Shown here one piece after another: positions 4,718-22,236 of a DNA stretch of 28,512 bases; position 1 is the first letter of the stretch, and every line of letters begins with the position of its first letter. Under the pieces are notes generated by a model. That model made no database searches and had not been told where the DNA came from. It saw nothing but the letters and a program-made list of their open reading frames with translations. The stretch is taken from assembly GCF_000142905.1 (NCBI RefSeq), contig NW_013657619.1, positions 210,905-239,416 on the forward strand, in the 5' to 3' direction. Made by a program: the position numbers and the translations under genes. This stretch comes from Thecamonas trahens ATCC 50062 (lineage: Eukaryota > Protista > Apusomonadida).

Positions 4718-6336
<1,619 letters not shown>

Positions 6337-7305: not shown

Positions 7306-10300
7306 ATGTGGGTTGCCGTTACGCAACGTTGCTGCTTGAGTACGGTCACGATGACGATGATGGCAATGGTTGTCATGGTCACACTCACCAGCACACTGGT
7401 GGTGGTCAAGGGCCAGACGACGCCGACCATTCCTCAGTGTATGCCAGAGCTGCAAGTGGTGAGGAACGCCCTGACAGTCTCCGCCTTTGCTGCTCGTGAC
7501 GTGGCTGTGGGCGATGTGTCCGGCAATGGCTTGCCGGATGTGGTGGCGGCGGCCGAAAATGCCAACGCTATTTTTTGTTTCCCATGACTTCGCCGGGAGT
7601 CTTCTCTCTCCCGCCTGTGACCATCCAGAGCTCTGTCTCGGAAGCGAGATCGGCGACTCTTTATGATTTGAATAGTGATGGCAACATGGATGTTGTCTAC
7701 ACTGCTCCGGGCTCCAACTCGGCGGCGTACAAGCTGAGCACTGGCGGAACATCGTTCGGCGGTCAGGTCAGTTTCCCAACTCCGGCTCTCACCGGAGCGT
7801 GTGCTGCTGCAGTGGCGCAGCTTGACGGCTCGCTTGGCGCTGATGTGGTTGTCTCGGCGCCTGGTGCGTCGGCACTTGTCTGGTTCGCCAACAGCGCGGG
7901 CCCGGTCGCCACGCCGTCGTTTGTGACTCCTGGCTCGTCGGTGGATGCGTCGGCCATGGGAAGCGGCGCGTGTGCGCTCGACTCGGGAGATTTTGACGGC
8001 GATGGTGACGTTGACCTGCTGCTCGGCGGAAGCGTTGGCGGCGGATGGTTCGCCAACGACGGTGCGGGCACCTTTGCCCCTGCGACCATGCTCTACACCG
8101 GCTCGGTCGGCGCGGTTGTCGCCGGCGACGTCGACGCCGACGCCGACATCGATGTGGCCATCGGCTCGGTCGGCGCCGTCCGGGTGTACGTCAACCCGGG
8201 CGACGGCAGCTTTACCGTTGTCACGCTCTCTGTCCCGTTCTCGGCCGTCATCACCTCGCTCGACATGGCCGACTACTCGGGCGACGCCGCGGTCGACATC
8301 ATTGTCGGCTCGCTCACTCCGTCGCGCATTGGCTTCCTGGCCACCGTTGTGCCGGGCGTCTCGTTTGCGTCGTATCTGGACATCTCGACTCAGGCCGACG
8401 GGGTGACCGCTGTTGCCGCCATCGACCTTCTCAACGACGGCGGCGCCGTCGATCTCGTCTCGGCCTCGGTCAACGACGACGCCATTGCCACCTACACCAA
8501 CGCGCCGCTGGTGCCCAAGTACGGCACCGCGCGGGTTGTCTCCACTGCCGTCAATGGCGTGTACTCGGTCGCTGCGGCTGACATTGACGGTGACGGCGAT
8601 GTTGACATTGTCTCGGCCGGCGAGTTCTCCTCGCGCATCGAGTGGTACCCCAACGTCGACGGCAGCGGCCTCTTTGGCCTCGCCAACGTCGTCACCCAGT
8701 CGGCCTCTGCCGCCCGCTTTGTCGTCTGCGCTGACCTCGACGCAGACGGCGACGTCGACATCGCCTCGGCCTCGTCGGGCGACAACACCGTGGCGTGGTA
8801 TCCCAACTCGGACGGCCGCGGCACCTTTACCTCGCGGCTCATCATCTCAGCCGCGGCCTCCTCGGTCCGCTCGCTCGGCCTGGTGGATCTCAACGGCGAC
8901 GGCGCGCTTGACATTCTCGCCGCCGAGCGCGGCGCCAGCCGCGTCGCCGCCTACTACTACCTCGGCTTTGGCGCCTCCTCCTCCGCCTTCTCCGCCGCCA
9001 CTGTCGTCGCTACCGGCGTCGGCGATGCCATCGACGTCGCGGGCGGCGACATTGACAACGACGGCCTGCCCGACGTTGTCGCCGTTGCCGAGGCCGACAA
9101 CAACATCGAGTGGTTCAAGACCCTCCCCGGCGGCATGTCGTGGGGCGCCCCGGTGGCTGTCGGCACCGCAATTGGTCCGCGCGCGGTCGCGGTCGGCGAC
9201 CTTGACGCCGACAACGACCTCGACGTGGCGGTGGCGGCGACCAGCGGCAACGAGCTGCTCTGGTTCCGCAACGACGCGCTCGGCGCGACCTGGACCACGA
9301 CGGTGCTCGACTCGGCGCTTGACGGCGCCCGCGATGTGCTCATCGCCGACCTCGACTCTGACGGTGACCTCGACGTGGCCGCCGTCTCGCTCTTCAACGA
9401 CATTGTGGGCGTGGTCTTCAACAACGGCGGTGGCTCGTTCGCGCCGCTTGTGACGGTCGATAGTGCCTTTGACGGCGCCATCACGCTTGCTGCAGGTGAC
9501 GTCGACGGCGACGGCGATCTTGACCTTGTCTCGGGCGCCATCTCAGTCGACACCGTCGCCTGGTTCTCCTTCCTCCGCCGCACCTCGTCGTTTGTCTACG
9601 CGCCGGCGTCGCGGGCGGTGGCCATCGGCTCTACGCCGACCACGCCGGCGTGGTGGGATTGCCAGCGGTCGTCGGTGCGGTGCCTTCTCGCCCACGCCTC
9701 GTCGGCCTCGCGCTGCGTCACCGACACCCTCGTCGTCCCGCCGGACACCACCTTTACCACCTGCCTCGCCGACGGCCACGCCCGCATCACCTACCCGCTG
9801 GTCGTCTCTTCCGCCTCCGGCGCCACCATCAACTGCTCCGCCACCGGCGGCGGCGTCCTCTTTGACGTCGGCCCGCACCCGCTGCCGACCGTCCCGCTCG
9901 CCGGCGCGCTCACCCTTGACAACATCGATGTCATCGGCATGACCACAGCCGCCGCCGCCCTCGACGGCGCCCCGGGCCTCCGTGTCGTCGGCAGCGGCGC
10001 CTCGCTCACCCTCCGCAACGCCACCGTGAGCGACGCGTCGTCGAGCTCCGGCTCGGGCTTGGCCTCGGTCCGCGCCACCGACATCGGCCGCGGCGGCGCG
10101 CTGCTCGTCGCCTCGGGCGGCGTTGTCGACGCTACCCACTGCGTCTTCCGCAGCAGCTCGGCGAGCGAGCACGGTGGCGCCATCGCCATCCGCGACCCGG
10201 GCTCAAAGCTGATGCTCAACGAGTCCCGCGTCGAGGGCTGCTCCGCGCCGCGCGGCGGCGGCGTGTACGCCTCGAGCGGCGCGGCCGTCTCAAGCGCTAG

Positions 10301-13050
10301 CTCCTTGTTTGCCGCCAACAGCGCGTCGCTGAGCTTTGGTGGCGGCATCGCACTCGAGAACGGCGCCCACGGCTTGCTCAGCGATGCCAGCTTTGCGCGC
10401 AACTCGGCAGCGTTGTGCGGCGGAGCAATGTATGTGACCGACACCTCCGAGCTCGCGGTGAGCGAGTCGAGCGTGACCGGGAACACGGCGCGGTACGGCG
10501 GCGGTCTGGCGACGGTGGCGGCCGACTCTGTGCTCTCGCTCGAGTCGGCGACGTCTTCGGCGGACGTGGTGGCGGGCAAGCTGCCGCTGGCGGCCGACTC
10601 GCGCAACACGACGCTGACGAGCGTGACCTTTGCCGACAACAAGGCAACCAACTACGGCGGCGGGATGTTTGCCTGTGGCGCTGGGTTGGTCATCGGCAAC
10701 GGCGGCACCAGCTGGGCTTGGACCGACAACACCGCCATCGACTCGCTGCGGGCGGTGCCGTCGGACGTCTTTGTCTGCGCCGCCACCAACGCAGCTGGCT
10801 CGGTAGTGCTTGGCAACCGCGACTCTGCCGAGGGCGTGTTGTGGACAACCTTTGCCGACAACACGTTTGCAGCTCTGAGCGGGGCGGCGATCAAGGGTCC
10901 TGTGGCGTCGCTGGCGTGGGCGCCAGACGCTGCGCCGGCGGACGAGGTCCAGATCGGTCTCCCGCTTGTGGGGCAGGTCATCGCGACCGACGTGCTCGGC
11001 AAGCCTGTCGTCGACGGCCGGGTCCCCATCCGCATCGCCTTTAGCAACACCGGGCCGACGGTGACCCGCGGACTCGACACCGGCGTGCTCAACGGGATTC
11101 CGACCACGACGCCGCCGGCGGCGGTGCGGATCTTCAACTCGTCGGTGGCGACGACGCCGCTCCCGATGACGTACACCTGGCAGCTGAGCGTGGTCACGTC
11201 GGCGGCCGGCGCCATTGCCGTCCCGCCGCTCACCGGCTCGGTCGACCTCCTCGGGTGCAAACCTGGGCTCGGCGGCGTGGTCGAGCCGGACAACGAGGGC
11301 GGGAGCGAGGATCTGAGCTTCTGCCGCGAGTGCGCGGCCGGCACGTTCTCGACGACCAACGGGACGCTCGGCCCGTGCGATCCGATTGTGCCGTGCACCG
11401 GCAACGCGCGCAACATCGGAACCGAGCGGGTGTACAACTGCGTGTGCAAGCAGGGCTTCTACCTTGCGCGGGTCCATCCCGAGCGCGGGCGCGAGTGTGA
11501 CAAGTGCCCCGAGGGCGCGATCTGCAACGAGGGCCTCAGCGATCCGCTCCCGGCCAAGGGCTTCTTCCGCACCTCGCGGACGTCGTTTGTGCGGTGCCGG
11601 CGGCCGGCGTGCCGCGGCGGAACGCAAGGGTGCGCCACCGGGTACGAGGGCTTTATGTGCAACGCGTGCTCCAAGAGGTACTACACCAAGGCCGAGTCGT
11701 GCCTCAAGTGCCCCGACGGCGACTCGGGCGCAGTTGCGCTCACCTTTATGGGCGTTGTTATCATCGGCATCGGCGCGGCGCTCATGACCCTCCTCCCGCT
11801 GTATAAGGCCGGCAAGGCCAACGCCGAGCGCGGCGCTAGCGACGACCCAACCGCGAGGCCGAGCGGACGCGGCTCATCCCGGCCACCATCTCCATGGTCC
11901 TCTTCGCCTTCCAGGTCGTGGGCCTTATCTCGGAGACCAAGGCCGGTTGGCGCGGCGAGTCCAAGGACGCAACCGAGAGCTTCCGCATCTTCAACCTCGA
12001 CGTCAACGCCTTTGCGCTCGAGTGCGAGGTCACCGATCCGTACGTGCTGTACTTTCTCAACCTCTCGCTCCCGCTGCTCCTCTTCCTTGTCTCGTTTGCC
12101 ACCGTGGTGGGCCTCTGGCTGGTGAGGCACAAGGTGCCCAAGCTCGCGCTCACCTATGGTGATGCCTCCATCAAGACGCTCTTCAACGTGACGCTTGTCG
12201 GCGTGGCGCCGCTGCTGCACATCCCGCTCTCGCGGGCCGCGCTCTCGCTCTTCAACTGCGTCAAGCTCCCGGACGGCAACTTTGTCCTCGCATCCGACCC
12301 GTCCGTGGTGTGCTTCAAGGGTGGGTGGTGGTCGGTCCTGCCGTTTGGCATCGTCGTCGTCCTCCTCTGCGTCCTTGGCCTCCCGGCCTACTTTGGCCTC
12401 GTCCTCCACAACCGGCGGCACAAGCTCTTCCGCGAGATCGTCTTTGTCCGCTACGGCGGTCTGTACAAGTTCTTCCGCGAGCCGTTCTACCTCTTTGCGG
12501 TCGTGGCCCTCGGTCGGCGTCTGCTCATGGTGATCACCGTTACCTTTGCCGGCGAGCTCCCGCTCCTCCAGCTCGCCCTCCTCACCGCCATCCTCTTTTC
12601 GCAGCTCATCTCGTCGCTCGAGGCCGAGCCGACTTTTACCTCACCTACAACGACACCGAGGCGCGCCTGTCGGCGGCCCTCATCGCCCTCACCCTCGTGG
12701 GCGGAGCATCCTACGCCGAGCGCAACTCAACGACCAGCATCGTCACCGCCATCGACGTCTGTACCATCACCGTCCTTGCTGCCATTTGCCTCATCGCCGT
12801 CTTGTCGCTTGGGACCGAGATCTTCGAGATCGTCCGCGAGAAGCGCGGCGAGTTCTCCGGCGAGATCGAGCGGGCCCACCGGCTCGCCACTATCCTCACC
12901 AAGGAGCTTCCGGACCTCGAGCCCGACGTGGCCACCAAGTTCAAGGCCGCCATCGACTACTCGCTCCGCGATCGGAAGGCCACGCTGTCGTCGTCCGTCT
13001 TTGAGGGGCCGGTCGAGCTGGACTACCTCGACTTGGACGAGTCTGGGTGA
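7306..13050 (+). CDS. Large (~1915 aa if repaired) cell-surface receptor-like protein: signal peptide, 14 FG-GAP/integrin-alpha-like repeats, GGA(I/L/V) beta-helix repeats, Cys-rich (GCC2/GCC3, ephrin-receptor-like) repeats and a ~9-TM domain; interrupted by three -1 frameshifts (~7575, ~11848, ~12634)
   Basis: Four ORF-track segments (7306-7587, 7575-12125, 11894-13120, 12310-13050) form one coherent architecture. The hydrophobic leader ends VVKG|Q. DxDGDGDxD-type motifs lie at ~7510-9530, GGALLV/GGAIAI/GGGVYA/GGAMYV motifs at ~10090-10670, CxxCxxG motifs at ~11255-11712, and the TM block with RYGGLY...RRL and P(Y)FY...YN at ~11730-12830. TGA is at 13048-13050. Confidence 0.88.
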
Positions 13051-13727: not shown

Positions 13728-15031
13728 TGACAGAGAGCTGTGCTCGGCGGGGAATCAATGTGTTGGCCACCTTTGCACCGATCTCCATGAAATTCAGCGT
13801 GCCAGTAGTACACTGCGCCTCATGGACATACGCAGCGTGGTATTGACCAAAGTGGTGGCATGCGTATAGTAGGAGGGGTCAAAGGTCAGGGACAAACGCT
13901 TCCCGAGCGTCCTACGCTCGCACCCCGACACTTACAGCGCCCAAGCTCCAGAAGCACACTAGCTACATAGCTATCATGATGGTAGGGGGAGGGGGCCTGA
14001 TCAGTGCCCGCTACGCAGTCGATTCCCTGCCACCCTTGGGTGCTGATCCCGCCCAGGCAGCACCCAAGTCGCTCGACCACCACCACTCCCAAGAGGCATG
14101 CAAGGACGCGCTCGGTGAGACGCGCCGCCGGAATGTATACGACAGTATTCATGTGCCTTGGGTTGTAGGCAGTTGCGCTCTGGATGCCGTGTGGCGGCAG
14201 ACGGCGGCGTACAAGGTGCCCTGGCGGTGGACGGTGACGGTGGTGCTCGTTTACTACTTCAGCTTGTCACGCGCAGCGGTGTCCGCTCCGCGACGGCTTC
14301 GCGAGGCTTTGCTACGTGCTTGCTCTCTGCACATCAACCGTCCCTCCCATCAAGCTCTCGGGTGCACTGCAGCTGTTGCGTCACCCAGCTTCCACTGCGT
14401 CGCCAGCCAGCACGGCACAACCGCGCGCAGCAAGGCAGCGCGATCCCGTCGCGAGTACAACTTGGATGCCATTGCAAGCCATTGCTTTCATCCACCATGG
14501 CCAACCCCTACCTCACCGCCGAGTCGCGACGGGCACTGCGACGGCCGGCTCGGACATCGCATCGGTGACTACTATCGTCGCACGCTTGCACTGGTGTGAC
14601 GGCCCACACGCTGATGAGAAGGGGAGGCGTTGGCGTGCGCGCAACTAGACCAAGGCGCGCGACGGTGAAGCAGACGCTGCAGGCGGTGGTGATGGAGGCG
14701 GGCCGATGTATGCAAACGCGCGCAACGTGGTCACCATCTTGCACGGGACTTTCATCGCGTCCACCCGCTCGCTCAACGCCTACCGGAAGCGGCCAGAGGT
14801 GCTTGCCGAAACGTCGCTGCATCGGCTTATTCGCGAGATCCGGATCTTTGTCTCGGGCGTGTTGCCGTCGGCTCCCGCAGTTTCCCTACACGGTCGGCTA
14901 CGCTGCGGCGCATCACAAAGCCTCCACGCTGCTGGGCGTGTTTTACTGCGGCATCGCGTCGCCCGCAGACGATGTCCCGGCGGCGGTGTGGGCGCTGCGG
15001 CACACCACGAGGAGAGATTTGAGCCGTAGGA

Positions 15032-17011
15032 CTAGCGGCGTGCTTGGAAGATGGCGATGGCCTTGTCGACGTGCTGGAGGATGTTGGCGCGGTCGGCCTG
15101 GAGGGCGGCGATGTTGCCCGTGGCGATGGTGACGTGATCCCTGACGTCGGCGAGCTCGGCCTTGGTGTCGGCGAGCTCGGCCTTGGTGTCGGCGAAGTCG
15201 GCCTTGGTGTCGGCGAGCTCGGTCCTGGTGTCGGCGAGCTCGGCCTTGGTGTCGGCGAGCTTGGCCTTGGTGTCGGCGAGCTCGGCCTCGAGTTTGTCCA
15301 CGCGAGTGGATGTCCCAGCAGAGGCGCCTGCACCGCCGCCAATGTCGCCACCGGCAGCGATGGTCTCACGGACGTGGTCAGCAACACGCTCCGGGATAGA
15401 GCTTGTACCAACGATGAGGTTGTAGACTTCTTTTGCAGCCGCGTTGGTGTCGCTGCCAGGCTTGTTGAGCACAGCCGAGGCAATTGACATGGCCGTCTCG
15501 CCTTTGGTCCCGAGAGCCCACACATCGGCACCTGCGGCGAGCAGTGCCATGGTTGCGAGGATGTTGGAGGGCGAGACGGTGACGTGGAGCGGGCGCAGTT
15601 CAAGGGACGGCTCGAGGGCATTGATGTCGGCGCCGGAGTTGATGAGGAAGGCAAAGACTGGGATGGAGAACGGGATTGTGTCTGCGGCATGAAGGACGAT
15701 GAAGAGGGCGAGGGTGGCCTTGTTGATGCCGCTGGTTAGCTCGGTGGCGCCGTCGCCATGCTCGCGGATCCAGGCGACCATCGCAGATGAGAACACTGCA
15801 GATCGCTCCACGGGAGCAGCTACGTACACATGCGTGTTGTCCGGCTGCAGCGTGAAGGGATCGAGACCAACTCCGCCCAGCTCGGCCATACGCTCAGCTG
15901 TCAGCTGGTTCGCGGCGATAATGGTGTCGAGCACAGTGGCGCCGTTTCCGTCGACGGCAGACTGGTCGAGGACGACGTCGAGGGCGGCAACTGCCTCGAG
16001 GAGAGCTTTGAGGGCACCGTGATTGGAGTGAGCAAAGGCGACATGAATGACGGGCGTATTGAACGTGGGTTCAACAGCGTTGACGTCTGCACCAGCGGTG
16101 ATGAGCTCGGAGACGATGTCGGCTGAGATCGGGACGGTCGGTGAGGCGCGGAGGACGACAAAGAGGGCGAGGGTGGCCTTGTTGATGCCGTTGGCGAGCT
16201 CGGTGGCGCCGTCTGCGTTGGCCTGCAGCGACTCGATCATGAGGTCGACAAAGACCGGCGCAGACGCGGGAGCAGCTACGTACACGTGCGTGTTGTCATC
16301 ATCGAGATCGTAGAGGTCTGCGCCGTTGGCAAGCAGCGTGTTGAGCGCGCTGAGGGAGAGGAGGTTGCAGCGGTCTATGGCATGCACCGGATGGGGCACA
16401 TGGGCCTGAGCAACGTCAAGCAATGCATGGGCGTGCTGCGATGCAGGGAAGTCTGGTTGGGCGATGGCAGTGCGTGCGCGATGCAAGTCGAGGGTAACCT
16501 TGGAGCAGTTGTTCAAGTCGAGGGTTGTGAGGTTGGGGCAGCCACCGGCGAGGGCGACCACTGCCGCATCGGTGATGTTGGAGCAGTTGTTCAAGTAGAG
16601 GGTTGTGAGGTTGGGGCAGCCACCGGCGAGGGCGACCACTGCCGCATCGGTGATGTCGGAGCAGTTGCGCAAGCCGAGGGTTGTGAGGTTGGGGCAGCCA
16701 CCGGCGAGGGCGACCACTGCCGCATCGGTGATGTTGGAGCAGTAGTCCAAGTAGAGGGTTGTGAGGTTGGGGCAGCCACCGGCGAGGGTGACCACTGCCG
16801 CATCGGTGATGTTGGAGCAGTTGTACAAGTTGAGGGTTGTGAGGTTGGGGCACATCTCCACCACCACCATGGCCATGGCGTCGGTGAAGGACTGGTTGTA
16901 CTCCGCCCTCACCTCGCCCACGCCCACCCCATCCCCCAGAGCCCTCCTCACCTCCTCCACTGTCCTCGTATTCGTCACGTTCACCACTCGTCCAGCACCA
17001 TTCGCAGCCAT
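15032..17011 (-). CDS. 659-aa protein: cysteine-containing LRRs (LRR_CC/AMN1-FBXL type), duplicated ankyrin-like module, C-terminal heptad coiled coil
   Basis: First ATG is at 17011 (the track's 17083 start is GTG); TAG at 15032-15034. Contains CPNLTTLxLxxCSNITDAAVVALAGG x4.5, the ankyrin-like motifs LITAGADVNA, LINSGADINA, RPLHV and LLAAGADVWA...GETAM, and (LADTKAE)n. Confidence 0.92.
   Translation of the reverse strand: MAANGAGRVVNVTNTRTVEEVRRALGDGVGVGEVRAEYNQSFTDAMAMVVVEMCPNLTTLNLYNCSNITDAAVVTLAGGCPNLTTLYLDYCSNITDAAVVALAGGCPNLTTLGLRNCSDITDAAVVALAGGCPNLTTLYLNNCSNITDAAVVALAGGCPNLTTLDLNNCSKVTLDLHRARTAIAQPDFPASQHAHALLDVAQAHVPHPVHAIDRCNLLSLSALNTLLANGADLYDLDDDNTHVYVAAPASAPVFVDLMIESLQANADGATELANGINKATLALFVVLRASPTVPISADIVSELITAGADVNAVEPTFNTPVIHVAFAHSNHGALKALLEAVAALDVVLDQSAVDGNGATVLDTIIAANQLTAERMAELGGVGLDPFTLQPDNTHVYVAAPVERSAVFSSAMVAWIREHGDGATELTSGINKATLALFIVLHAADTIPFSIPVFAFLINSGADINALEPSLELRPLHVTVSPSNILATMALLAAGADVWALGTKGETAMSIASAVLNKPGSDTNAAAKEVYNLIVGTSSIPERVADHVRETIAAGGDIGGGAGASAGTSTRVDKLEAELADTKAKLADTKAELADTRTELADTKADFADTKAELADTKAELADVRDHVTIATGNIAALQADRANILQHVDKAIAIFQARR
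15146..15288 (-). repeat. 21-bp tandem repeat, ~6.8 units, encoding heptads TKAELAD
   Basis: gtcggcgagctcggccttggt units at 15146, 15167, 15188, 15209, 15230, 15251 and 15272 (partial). Confidence 0.97.
16501..16852 (-). repeat. 78-bp tandem repeat, ~4.5 units, encoding 26-aa LRRs
   Basis: Units begin with ggagcag at 16502, 16580, 16658, 16736 and 16814 on the + strand. Confidence 0.97.
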
Positions 17012-18559
17012 ACTCCTCTCCACTCTGTCAGACAGAGAGATATACCCTTCCCACCTTCCGCATACCCCCCGCCACCCACCCACTCACACAGCCATTCGGC
17101 AGACATCAAAGCCATCCAAAAGAATTTGACTCTGATCGTGTCAGGCAGGATCACAGCCCCCTCCACCGCTCAGACACCCCCACCATACTCATTGCCCACT
17201 TGTATATCCTCCCGACCACCCTCTGTACACCCCCATGGTCCCGTATCATCCATCCCTCTCCATCGTCCCCTCCCGGCACTGTGACGTCAATCTCGGCACT
17301 GTGACGTCGTGCCCTTCCCTGCCCCGTCTGCCGGGAAGCCCTGCCACCACCCGCCACCGCCCGCCCCTTCCGCCCGCTCCGTCGGATGGGTCACTGCCTT
17401 GATCACCTTCGCAATGGTCTCGCTCTTCCCTCTCCGGGGCATGCCTCTCCGTCGGCCTCTCTCCAACCCGTCCTTCTGCCAGACGTCGTCGATGACTTCT
17501 GCGGACATGCCCAACACGCTGCTGCGCTCGTGGGTGTCTCGATCAACGTCTGCTGGCCACTGCGCCTCGGTCTTGCCTATCTTCTGCTGATGGGCTGGTC
17601 AGGCTTGGCCGGCCGATCGCCGGGGTGGGTCACTGTGTCGATCGACGTGATCCAGCAGGCAGAGATGGCGAGCGCGATAGATGCGAGGACATCTCGAGCC
17701 GTCAAGCGAGCGGAGCGATCGGCTGGTTGGGAGCTGGAGATGGCCGAGCGCACTTGGTACAGGCACTGTGAGATGCCCGATCTGTCCTTGAGCTCGGCTG
17801 ATCGATGGGGATCATGGTCGATGTCGAAGCTGGTGTCCCGCGTGAGGATGGATGAGGTCGAGCGCCATGCGGCTTGAGTCTGTGGTCTGTCTCGGCAATC
17901 ACCAGAACCGGTGCGATGGTGATGGGTACTACATGCTATGCGACTTTCACATCTGCTGGACGTGTGCCTGTATGAAGGACAGCATGTTGTGGGAAAGTGC
18001 GGATGCTGTGAGGCAGGTGGGGCAGGGGGGGGGTCTCTGTAGTGATGCCGATTGCGATCGGGGCGATGGCCGCGGTGAAGCGCCGATGAGCCTGTGGCGA
18101 TGGCTACGACATGACGTGAGGGGGTAAATGGTCATCGGGCGGTTGGTACTGGGGATGTGGGCCACGGACTGAGTACATAGTTGTGACGAGCACTGCGATG
18201 CGAGTGCGTCATGGGGCGTGGCCACGACTGAGGTGTATGCGTGGATGGCTTTATCGACTGGCCAGTTGCTGGACAGCAGGCTCGTGACCAGCAAGCAGGT
18301 GATGGGATGGAAGAGGATGGATATCTGCATCATCCGTCAGTCTGTCCGATGAGTGTGTGTCGATGCTTGGATGGAATGGGAAGGTGGAGGGAGCCGAGCA
18401 GTGATCACCAAATTCTTTCGGCGACGGACGATTCAGAGCTACGACAACAGCTACTGCACAACACACACCGCTTCTACACGGATCTCCGCCAAGTCGACAA
18501 CCCGTTCATCGGTCCCCATTCCGTACCCATGGCGGCAAGGCAAGGCATGTTAGCGTAGC

Positions 18560-18686
18560 NNNNNNNNNNNNNNNNNNNNNNNNNNNNNNNNNNNNNNNNN
18601 NNNNNNNNNNNNNNNNNNNNNNNNNNNNNNNNNNNNNNNNNNNNNNNNNNNNNNNNNNNNNNNNNNNNNNNNNNNNNNNNNNNNNN
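18560..18686. other. Assembly gap (N run)
   Basis: Run of n. Confidence 1.
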
Positions 18687-20150
18687 GCCGAGGCCATCGT
18701 CTCCTTCACACACTATCCGAGTGTGGCCAACGCGTGTACTTCGCAGACACGGACAACCACAGAAGCCAGTGGCGATCCCATGCCGCTGCCAGCTGGTGCC
18801 AAGGTTGCCATCGGGCTTGACTCGCCACGCACCTCGTCCAAACTGGGTCGTGCCCTGTTGCCGATGGTGGCGCGCGGCGACGAGCCTGCAATGGTCCTGG
18901 ACTACTTGTGTCGTCCAAGCTGGAGAAGCTCATGGATGGCGAGAACATCATGGTCAGTAGCCACAGCGAGTTCAAGTCCTGTATCATCTACACAAGCAGC
19001 CGCCGCGGGGTCGACTTGAATCGGGCGCGCTTGATTGTAGTGGCCGGCCAGGACAAGATAACAGTGCAGCTCCTGCAGGCGCTGTACGCGGCGTCGGGTG
19101 CGGCAGTCTCGGACACAGCCAAGTACTCGGTCGAGGGGCTCGGGATGCTGCGCGGGCGGGGCAGCCCGAGCGAGCTCGTGTACATCGATGCGGATGGTAA
19201 TGATTGTATGCTATGTCTCCCAGCCCGCCCCATCCACTACCACGAGTCCGCCTACGCCCGCAGGCCCACTGTCGCCGAGGAGTGGATCGTGCCCGCCAAG
19301 TTTGTCGAGGAGGACCAGTCGTCGGGCAAGGCGTCTCGCGCCGGGGGTGAGCTGATGCGCCGCTTCAAGGGCCGCGCAGAGCTCGAGAAGGCGCGATCGG
19401 GCACGTTTTGGTGGCACCGGTCAAACAAGAAGCACCTTTGGGCATATCCTCTCGAGGTTGTTGACAGGGGTGATGTGTCCTCTTCTNNNNNNNNNNNNNN
19501 NNNNNNNNNNNNNNNNNNNNNNNNNNNNNNNNNNNNNNNNNNNNNNNNNNNNNNNNNNNNNNNNNNNNNNNNNNNNNNNNNNNNNNNNNNNNNNNNNNNN
19601 NNNNNNNNNNNNNNNNNNNNNNNNNNNNNNNNNNNNNNNNNNNNNNAGCACTTGCGGATGTACGGGGTCCGCAAGCGGGTTCATGACACGGTGGCTGTCT
19701 TGGGCATGTCCGCCAGCTACGAGTGGCTGAACGCAGTCATTGCCACGGCCATCGCGTCGAACAAGAGCGACACACCGTTCAAGCGGCTGGCATTTATCGG
19801 CGACACGGTGCTTACCCTTGCGCCATGCAGGACATGGAGTCTCAGGAAGCGTGTCAACAGTATCTCAAGGCCACTGGCATGGATGATGTTGTGCTTTCGG
19901 ACTCTTACGATATACAAGCCGAGGCCATCTTGTGTGCCATCTACCTGCTGTATGGCCTCGACGACACCGAGCGCGTCTGGCGTATGTTCGTGTCGGCAGT
20001 GGCCCTGGTAGACGATGCGGCGCCGAGCGGCTCAAGCACTTCAACGCTGAGAAGTGGCAAGCAGGAGAGGCAGCAGACCGTGACGACTCGTTTGATGGAA
20101 TCCGTGGCGGCGTGGCAGGGAGCCGAGCTCGGAGTTCCAGACTCTGATGT
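18687..20150 (+). pseudogene. Disrupted or gapped gene containing a divergent RNase III-like domain (~19650-20010); boundaries uncertain
   Basis: FKRLAFIGDTVLTLA (19778-19822) resembles the RNase III signature ERLEFLGDAVL. EAILCAIYLLYGLD (from 19921) resembles EAIIGAIYLDxG but lies in a different frame. Coding-like frames at 18723-18907 and 18908-19486 precede an N gap. Confidence 0.6.
19487..19646. other. Assembly gap (N run)
   Basis: Run of n. Confidence 1.
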
Positions 20151-21765: not shown

Positions 21766-22236
21766 NNNNNNNNNNNNNNNNNNNNNNNNNNNNNNNNNNN
21801 NNNNNNNNNNNNNNNNNNNNNNNNNNNNNNNNNNNNNNNNNNNNNNNNNNNNNNNNNNNNNNNNNNNNNNNNNNNNNNNNNNNNNNNNNNNNNNNNNNNN
21901 NNNNNNNNNNNNNNNNNNNNNNNNNNNNNNNNNNNNNNNNNNNNNNNNNNNNNNNNNNNNNNNNNNNNNNNNNNNNNNNNNNNNNNNNNNNNNNNNNNNN
22001 NNNNNNNNNNNNNNNNNNNNNNNNNNNNNNNNNNNNNNNNNNNNNNNNNNNNNNNNNNNNNNNNNNNNNNNNNNNNNNNNNNNNNNNNNNNNNNNNNNNN
22101 NNNNNNNNNNNNNNNNNNNNNNNNNNNNNNNNNNNNNNNNNNNNNNNNNNNNNNNNNNNNNNNNNNNNNNNNNNNNNNNNNNNNNNNNNNNNNNNNNNNN
22201 NNNNNNNNNNNNNNNNNNNNNNNNNNNNNNNNNNNN
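21766..22236. other. Assembly gap (N run)
   Basis: Run of n. Confidence 1.

Follow-up and report, generated by a model that had tools for sequence, protein, structure and literature searches.

Fungal NOD-like receptors (NLRs) of the HET-E, HET-D and NWD groups carry WD40, ankyrin (ANK) or tetratricopeptide (TPR) repeats of high internal conservation (HIC), in which positive selection acts on the binding face (Dyrka et al. 2014; PMC4986451). The number of HIC repeats is polymorphic, concerted evolution is presumed to act on them, and that study found no leucine-rich repeats (LRRs) in fungal NLRs (PMC4986451). Here we describe an LRR array with the same kind of variation in the apusomonad Thecamonas trahens ATCC 50062. 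The stretch of DNA analysed (the window; 28,512 nucleotides) is the terminal 28.5 kb of contig C61 (239,416 bp), and it contains on its minus strand a gene for a protein with LRRs, ankyrin repeats and a coiled coil, whose LRRs are encoded by tandem 78-bp units. Our analysis shows that diversifying selection acts on the predicted concave LRR face, at codons 6, 8, 10 and 11 of the unit and more weakly at codons 14 and 21. We think it likely that the array is a ligand-binding LRR domain, in a family restricted to Thecamonas, that is shaped by concerted evolution together with diversifying selection on this face.

Like the fungal HIC proteins, the Thecamonas proteins combine near-identical tandem repeats and a varying repeat number with selection on a few binding-face residues, and they form a multigene family of presumably intracellular proteins, as the fungal receptors do (PMC4986451). 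The units behave as HIC repeats, with a framework identity of about 97% and a ratio of non-synonymous to synonymous divergence (dN/dS) of about 10 at codons 6, 8, 10 and 11. Unlike in fungi, the repeat is an LRR, the domain order is LRR (N-terminal), ankyrin, coiled coil, and the host is an apusomonad. Neither the window protein nor its paralogs gave a Pfam match to NACHT or NB-ARC, the nucleotide-oligomerization domains (NODs) of such receptors; the protein likewise lacks TIR, death-fold and any other known effector domain, and there is no effector domain at the N-terminus.

Among protists, the promastigote surface antigens (PSA/GP46) of Leishmania are a family of LRR proteins under strong positive selection, in which intragenic and intergenic recombination alters the number of LRRs and makes chimeric genes (Devault and Banuls 2008; PMC2584048). 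Both families are protist multigene families with LRR arrays, positive selection and recombination. PSA proteins, in contrast, are secreted or membrane anchored, with cysteine-rich flanks and another LRR signature, and the Thecamonas protein has no signal peptide, a 26-residue unit of the cysteine-containing (CC) type with an ITD motif, and the added ankyrin and coiled-coil parts.

CC-type LRRs are defined by a unit of about 26 residues with the pattern LxxLxLxxC followed by an ITD motif, and near-perfect CC-like LRRs with positively selected positions occur in the GALA effectors of Ralstonia, which also carry an F-box (Kajava et al. 2008; PMC2244805). The Thecamonas unit has 26 residues and shows LxxLxLxxC and then ITD, and the AlphaFold2 (AF2) model, computed for the whole window protein from a 7-sequence alignment, contains a solenoid like those of Skp2 and the FBXL proteins. 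The best Foldseek matches of the LRR domain are the LRRs of FBXL2, FBXL17, FBXL5 and Skp2 (E-values of 6e-9 to 1e-4), and the FBXL proteins are the closest solved folds; FBXL2, FBXL17, Skp2 and GALA share with the Thecamonas protein the cysteine-containing 26-residue unit with its ITD motif. They differ from it in having an F-box. None was detectable in the window protein (no match to PF00646 or PF12937 at E≤0.1), and F-box domains are missing from the precomputed Pfam lists of paralogs P0001 to P0007; they are present in the distant FBXL matches. Hence, the name 'F-box/LRR-repeat protein' used for this gene by NCBI and UniRef reflects only the type of repeat, and our result corrects it.

In plant NLRs and receptor-like proteins (RLPs), the solvent-exposed residues of the LRR motif xxLxLxx are hypervariable, and the genes form clustered, recombining families. 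In these proteins as in those of Thecamonas, the x residues of the LRR beta strand are under diversifying selection; plant units are, however, not homogenised at the DNA level, and plant NLRs carry the NB-ARC domain that the Thecamonas proteins lack. Lamprey variable lymphocyte receptor (VLR) genes are incomplete in the germline and are completed by copying of flanking LRR cassettes, with an AID/APOBEC-like deaminase, unlike the Thecamonas germline loci that were read, which are complete open reading frames (ORFs). The resemblance to a diversity-generating retroelement (DGR) is superficial and lies in the repertoire rich in N, Y, S and D with NNC codons. The Thecamonas system has no reverse transcriptase (RT) on the array contigs, no template and no adenine specificity, and it comprises many loci with about 100 units rather than one variable region. 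The tests for an F-box (FBXL), for a NOD (NLR) and for an RT with its template (DGR) all failed, and we therefore regard the family as HIC-like in its working and not as a member of the HIC family. The HIC repeats of fungal NLRs are its closest analogue in evolutionary mode.

Diversifying selection on the predicted concave face

The window array has four complete units and a truncated fifth (Table 1), with the translation CPNLTTLxLxxCSNITDAAVVALAGG. The first-pass annotation had described the units as identical except at seven sites, and a second reading on the minus strand matched it exactly. The variable sites are the first two positions of codons 8 and 10 and the first position of codons 11, 14 and 22. 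In units 1 to 5, codon 8 reads AAC/TAC/GGC/TAC/GAC, codon 10 TAC/GAC/CGC/AAC/AAC and codon 11 AAC/TAC/AAC/AAC/AAC; in units 1 to 4, codon 14 reads AAC/AAC/GAC/AAC and codon 22 ACC/GCC/GCC/GCC. All seven changes are non-synonymous. About 74% of sites are non-synonymous, and for the window alone the neutral probability of seven such changes out of seven is about 0.12; at this scale both the all-non-synonymous pattern and the derivability of the codons from AAC are statistically weak points. The real signal in the window is the clustering of variable sites in codons 8 to 11, which is overwhelmingly confirmed genome-wide.

In the 28.7-Mb T. trahens assembly, 37 places on 11 contigs match the 352-bp array, and 110 units were extracted from the matching regions, a minimum for the genome. 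For the analysis of selection we used the 86 units with at most 9 mismatches from the consensus and compared them pairwise by the Nei-Gojobori method (NG86) with bootstrapping; a tree-based site model was not applied, since the units are only 78 nt long and recombine. Across these units, 6 states occur at codon 6, 8 at codon 8, 10 at codon 10 and 6 at codon 11, and most other codons are invariant. The four hypervariable codons together have a proportion of non-synonymous differences (pN) of 0.43 and a proportion of synonymous differences (pS) of 0.06, from which the dN/dS of about 10 follows; it is 0.27 to 0.31 for the 20 framework codons and about 1 for codons 14 and 21 together. Codon by codon, the ratio of pN to the pooled pS is 6.3 at codon 6, 8.5 at codon 8, 9.3 at codon 10 and 4.7 at codon 11, and 2.2 and 2.3 at codons 14 and 21. 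Only for these six codons does the bootstrap interval lie above 1, and no other codon exceeds 1.3. Synonymous diversity is alike in the hypervariable codons (0.064) and in the framework (0.051). The dN/dS check proposed in the first-pass annotation thus did not return a value at or below 1.

The x positions of LxxLxLxxC are the classical concave-face positions of LRRs. In the AF2 model the beta strand of each unit comprises codons 7 to 9, and codon 8 encodes the residue of the strand that faces outward, with codons 6, 10 and 11 on either side; codon 14 lies 9 nt 3' of the hypervariable block on the coding strand. The residues at codons 8, 10 and 11 are mostly N, Y, S, D and G.

A neutral alternative would be that the units were amplified very recently and that the x positions are merely unconstrained, with no selection for diversity. 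LRR x positions do tolerate most residues, and recent duplications of a higher order, such as the recurring three-unit blocks in C74, are present in the long arrays. This explanation predicts a ratio of 1 or less, however, and the observed non-synonymous variation at codons 6, 8, 10 and 11 exceeds the synonymous variation of the same units 5- to 9-fold, with bootstrap intervals above 1. The synonymous sites next to them (the third positions of codons 4, 5, 7, 9 and 12) show either no variation or a change in just 1 of the 86 units, and the same positions vary in a separately homogenised array (C73a) and in an environmental relative. We therefore consider neutral variation very unlikely, and diversifying selection remains our reading of these codons.

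Homogenisation and exchange of units

Units are nearly as similar between arrays as within them, with a mean of 1.63 framework differences over 63 nt within arrays vs 1.99 between arrays. In the non-repeat C-terminal domain, pS between paralogs ranges from 0.066 to 0.32; for the same gene pairs it is 0.024 to 0.062 in the repeat framework, and for the window gene and C74 the two values are 0.275 and 0.024, respectively. Because the framework pS is far below that of the non-repeat part, the arrays must have been homogenised between loci whose flanks are diverged. Together with the dN/dS of the hypervariable codons, these low framework values bear out what the first-pass annotation had named as the conservative explanation, namely concerted evolution with positive selection on the x positions under a GC bias at third codon positions (GC3).

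Three further sequences allow a comparison with the main family. The C73a array has its own framework (pS of 0.063 within the array and 0.26 to 0.31 to the main family) and varies at the positions of the main family and, in addition, at codons 13 to 15. The units of the environmental relative (European Nucleotide Archive [ENA] metagenome contig L043; protein P0004, 62% identical) all carry their own framework substitutions at codons 5, 15, 23 and 25, and they vary at codons 5, 8, 10 and 11. The diverged paralog P0007/AMSG_11238 (L037, C73 10001-20000, at about 3171) has ordinary, non-homogenised CC-LRRs followed by the same ankyrin and coiled-coil tail; it is a useful outgroup with an ancestral-like state. 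All three agree with the homogenisation of the arrays.

Among the 86 units we counted 45 distinct hypervariable words (the combined states of the hypervariable codons) and 27 framework haplotypes. Eleven words and four whole units are common to different loci, and of the unit pairs that share a word, 76% differ in their framework, almost as strongly as pairs whose words differ. Blocks of several units recur within long arrays. The recurrence of words across loci and frameworks indicates that they are stable inherited cassettes and not the fresh products of a mutator.

Two cases of closely similar loci were observed. In C102 (L040 5954-6247) and C60 (L039, about 8148-8304), the same unit order TNFS, TYEY, TGDN stands beside N gaps, and these probably represent either a single locus present twice in the assembly or a segmental duplication of very recent date. 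Over 680 bp of the ankyrin region, the copy on C87 (L042 1-1953, compared with window 15032-17400) matches the window gene with 99.85% identity, but in the N-terminal part and 5' flank the identity is only 91%, and an N gap stands in place of most of the array. It is either a gene-conversion mosaic or a redundant or alternative-haplotype assembly.

A more active process would be programmed or somatic cassette exchange in the manner of lamprey VLRs or of antigenic variation, in which partial arrays and fragments serve as donors to an expressed copy. The reuse of about 45 unit words across orders and loci, the numerous fragments and incomplete copies at contig ends and mosaic copies such as that on C87 would fit such a process. 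However, recombination in the germline would produce cassette reuse, fragments and mosaics in a multigene family just as well, and each of the loci examined is a complete ORF that appears functional, not an incomplete germline gene. Every array lies within about 25 kb of a contig end, but no telomere-type repeats were found near the arrays and many N gaps are present there, so that a subtelomeric location is unproven and the position at contig ends, like the fragments, may be an effect of repeat assembly. We give programmed exchange as little credence as neutral variation and prefer recombination in the germline.

The first-pass annotation had also raised the idea of DGR-like mutagenesis, in which an RT would copy an AAC-rich template into the array with adenine-specific errors; to our knowledge, no DGR is known in eukaryotes. 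In the window the idea has some appeal, as A is among the states at all seven variable sites, the variable codons among 8 to 14 are all NNC, and codons 8, 10 and 11 are rich in N, Y, S, D and G, like the variable regions of DGRs. The window observations behind it were correct but do not extend to the genome. Genome-wide, only 15 of the 25 variable sites have an A state and 10 do not; synonymous C/T and G/A variants exist, so that the claimed lack of synonymous differences holds in the window only (codon 16 is ACC in 63 units and ACT in 23); and derivation from AAC, for which any NNC codon qualifies, fails for the 24 of 344 hypervariable codon instances with G, A or T at the third position (AAG, GAA and TTT), to which the C73a array adds CGG and TGG. 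Variation is not concentrated at sites with A in the consensus, of which 6 of 15 vary, compared with 19 of the 63 sites with another consensus base (Fisher p=0.54). The 9 invariant A sites include the two A's of the codon 3 AAC, which are unchanged in all 86 units. The 7 RVT_1 matches in the genome are all on contigs that carry no array, all unit copies found in the whole assembly are in coding arrays with no separate non-coding template, and identical words recur across loci and framework haplotypes, as expected if they are inherited and not regenerated. The NNC pattern fits the codon bias of the gene, in which 57% of the codons end in C, GC3 is 0.78 and two-fold NNY codons end in C and T at 74:21; the adenine pattern in the window arises because an N/Y/D-rich repertoire is encoded under this bias. 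The checks for an A excess, a template and an RT on the array contigs were thus all negative, we reject the strict form of the idea, and any DGR-like mechanism is extremely improbable.

Collapsed or chimeric repeats can hardly have produced the variants, in spite of N gaps near many arrays and frame breaks in C113 and C74, since the window array lies in at least 1.7 kb of gap-free sequence inside an intact 683-codon ORF, the codon-structured variation is confined to positions that are the same on 11 contigs and on a metagenome contig of independent origin, and errors would not spare synonymous sites. In C74 the ORF is split inside the long array (L034, about 5616-5701), and C113 (L031 3335-3603) has unit spacings of 79 bp and 111 bp and one garbled unit. 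These frame breaks are either pseudogenes or assembly errors.

Architecture of the gene and its family

Table 1. Features of the LRR-ankyrin-coiled-coil gene in the window (pLDDT, predicted local distance difference test; TRF, Tandem Repeats Finder)
Feature	Position	Strand	Evidence or details
ORF	15032..17083	-	intact, 683 codons
CDS of LRR-ankyrin-coiled-coil gene	15032..17014	-	660 aa from ATG at 17014; stop 15032-15034
Degenerate LRR-like N-terminal cap, 54 aa, two strand-helix units ahead of the homogenised array	16853..17014	-	AF2; pLDDT about 88-91; elements E9-12 H19-26 E32-36 H45-54
Tandem array	16500-16852	-	TRF: period 78, 4.5 copies, 94% matches, zero indels, score 629
Four complete 78-bp (26-aa) cysteine-containing LRR units	16541..16852	-	TRF, reading frame, Pfam, Foldseek; units begin at 16852, 16774, 16696, 16618
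Unit 5, truncated (codons 1-13), continuing into conserved linker KVTLDL...	16502..16540	-	begins at 16540; departs from the repeat past codon 13 (AAG GTT); same junction in all paralogs
Hypervariable block (codons 6-11), unit 1	16820..16837	-	per-codon pN/pooled pS; AF2 strand codons 7-9
Hypervariable blocks, units 2-5	16742-16759, 16664-16681, 16586-16603, 16508-16525	-	equivalent to the unit 1 block
Linker and ankyrin-repeat region with internally duplicated module	15299..16459	-	Pfam Ank_4 2e-8, family profile
C-terminal coiled coil	15038..15307	-	TRF, AF2 single helix
21-bp tandem repeat within the coiled coil	15146-15288	-	TRF, 6.8 copies; encodes ELADTKA heptads

The NCBI model of the gene (P0002; 'hypothetical protein, variant') is a protein of 624 residues that is 99% identical to ours and has its start placed later, at 16876. 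The ATG at 17014 is most likely the true start, because the environmental relative P0004 and the paralogs conserve the 52 residues that precede the NCBI start. Pfam identified LRR_4 (4.9e-18), LRR_6 (1.8e-10) and Ank_4 in the window protein and no other match above noise. A profile built from the C-terminal halves of the family matches designed ankyrin repeat proteins (DARPins) and ankyrin with an E-value of 3e-22; the Ank_4 match and this profile both identify the protein as one with 33-residue ANK repeats. In the AF2 model, residues 8 to 186 form the LRR solenoid (pLDDT of 80 to 91) and residues 570 to 659 one long C-terminal helix (about 70 to 83). Residues 187 to 572 have pLDDT values below 50, and the ankyrin region was assigned by the sequence profile instead. 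Reading the N-terminal sequence by eye, we saw no signal peptide or hydrophobic leader and no membrane span, and the proteins of the family are probably cytosolic. Upstream of the gene, the window contains N runs at 18560-18686, 19487-19646 and 21766-22236.

At least 12 loci, besides fragments, have the C-terminal domain, and the paralogs have in common the N-terminal cap, the KVTLDL linker, the ankyrin region and the coiled coil. Repeat number varies at three scales. The LRR arrays have about 5 or 6 units in C61, C70, C48 and C73c, 17 in C73a, at least 24 in C34 (in an intact ORF of 1184 residues) and about 30 in C74; the copy number of the 21-bp heptad repeat varies among paralogs; and the ankyrin module is present once in P0005, twice in P0002 and three times in P0001.

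The duplicated unit is larger than the gene, because most paralogous loci share both the 5' flank (window 17400-18500; more than 1.1 kb, 91 to 97% identical) and the initial 270 to 385 bp of the 3' flank (window 14000-14385). Genes with FG-GAP/VCBS-like repeats adjoin the LRR-ankyrin genes in the window (7575-12125, plus strand), in L033 (9880-10000) and in L044 (450-700), and on a metagenome contig an FG-GAP-like stretch lies upstream of the LRR protein (P0006) within one ORF. The two genes may form a duplicated two-gene block.

A scan of metagenomes with the C-terminal profile yielded two true relatives and seven generic ankyrin matches. Both true relatives come from JGI 3300026264, the sample of P0006, and a broad set across species was not obtainable. 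We regard the family as a multigene family restricted to Thecamonas, and our literature searches found no description of it.

A possible recognition repertoire

The near-identity of the 78-bp units, synonymous sites included, both within and between loci points to unequal crossing-over and gene conversion. Because the words are stable cassettes, new specificities arise mainly through point substitution under selection, and whole units are then reshuffled, duplicated and lost. The concave face would bind variable protein ligands and the coiled coil would oligomerise the protein, and the family might be a repertoire for the recognition of non-self, pathogens or prey. By analogy with the receptors discussed above, its role may be immune-like.

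Several points weigh against this interpretation. A pairwise NG86 comparison does not amount to a phylogenetic site test when the repeats recombine, and the strong codon bias could lower pS somewhat, although neither ten-fold nor in the repeats only. The redundancy of C102 with C60 and of C87 with C61 may inflate the count of words common to loci, and the assembly near the longer arrays is gappy, so that unit counts and orders there may be wrong. The assignment to the cytosol comes from the reading of the N-terminus and the lack of a hydrophobic segment. Because known effector and signalling domains are missing from the proteins, a role in immunity or recognition would be an analogy.

A stronger version, a NOD-independent LRR repertoire for non-self in an apusomonad that is renewed by cassette exchange among at least 12 loci, and in the extreme during clonal growth, seems improbable to us. 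If the extreme version were true, programmed gene conversion in this organism would be a protist analogue of the diversification of VLRs and antigen receptors.

In summary, the array is a clean and hitherto undescribed example, in an evolutionarily important protist, of near-identical repeats with hypervariable binding residues, a hallmark of fast-evolving recognition receptors for which the WD, ANK and TPR repeats of fungal NLRs are the best-documented case; its mechanism is conventional. The same evolutionary regime acts here on LRRs, in a deep-branching relative of animals and fungi. If the family is indeed a recognition repertoire, the combination of repeat homogenisation and diversification would have arisen independently of NLRs, and the family would offer a tractable entry to the question of how free-living heterotrophic flagellates distinguish prey, pathogens and kin.

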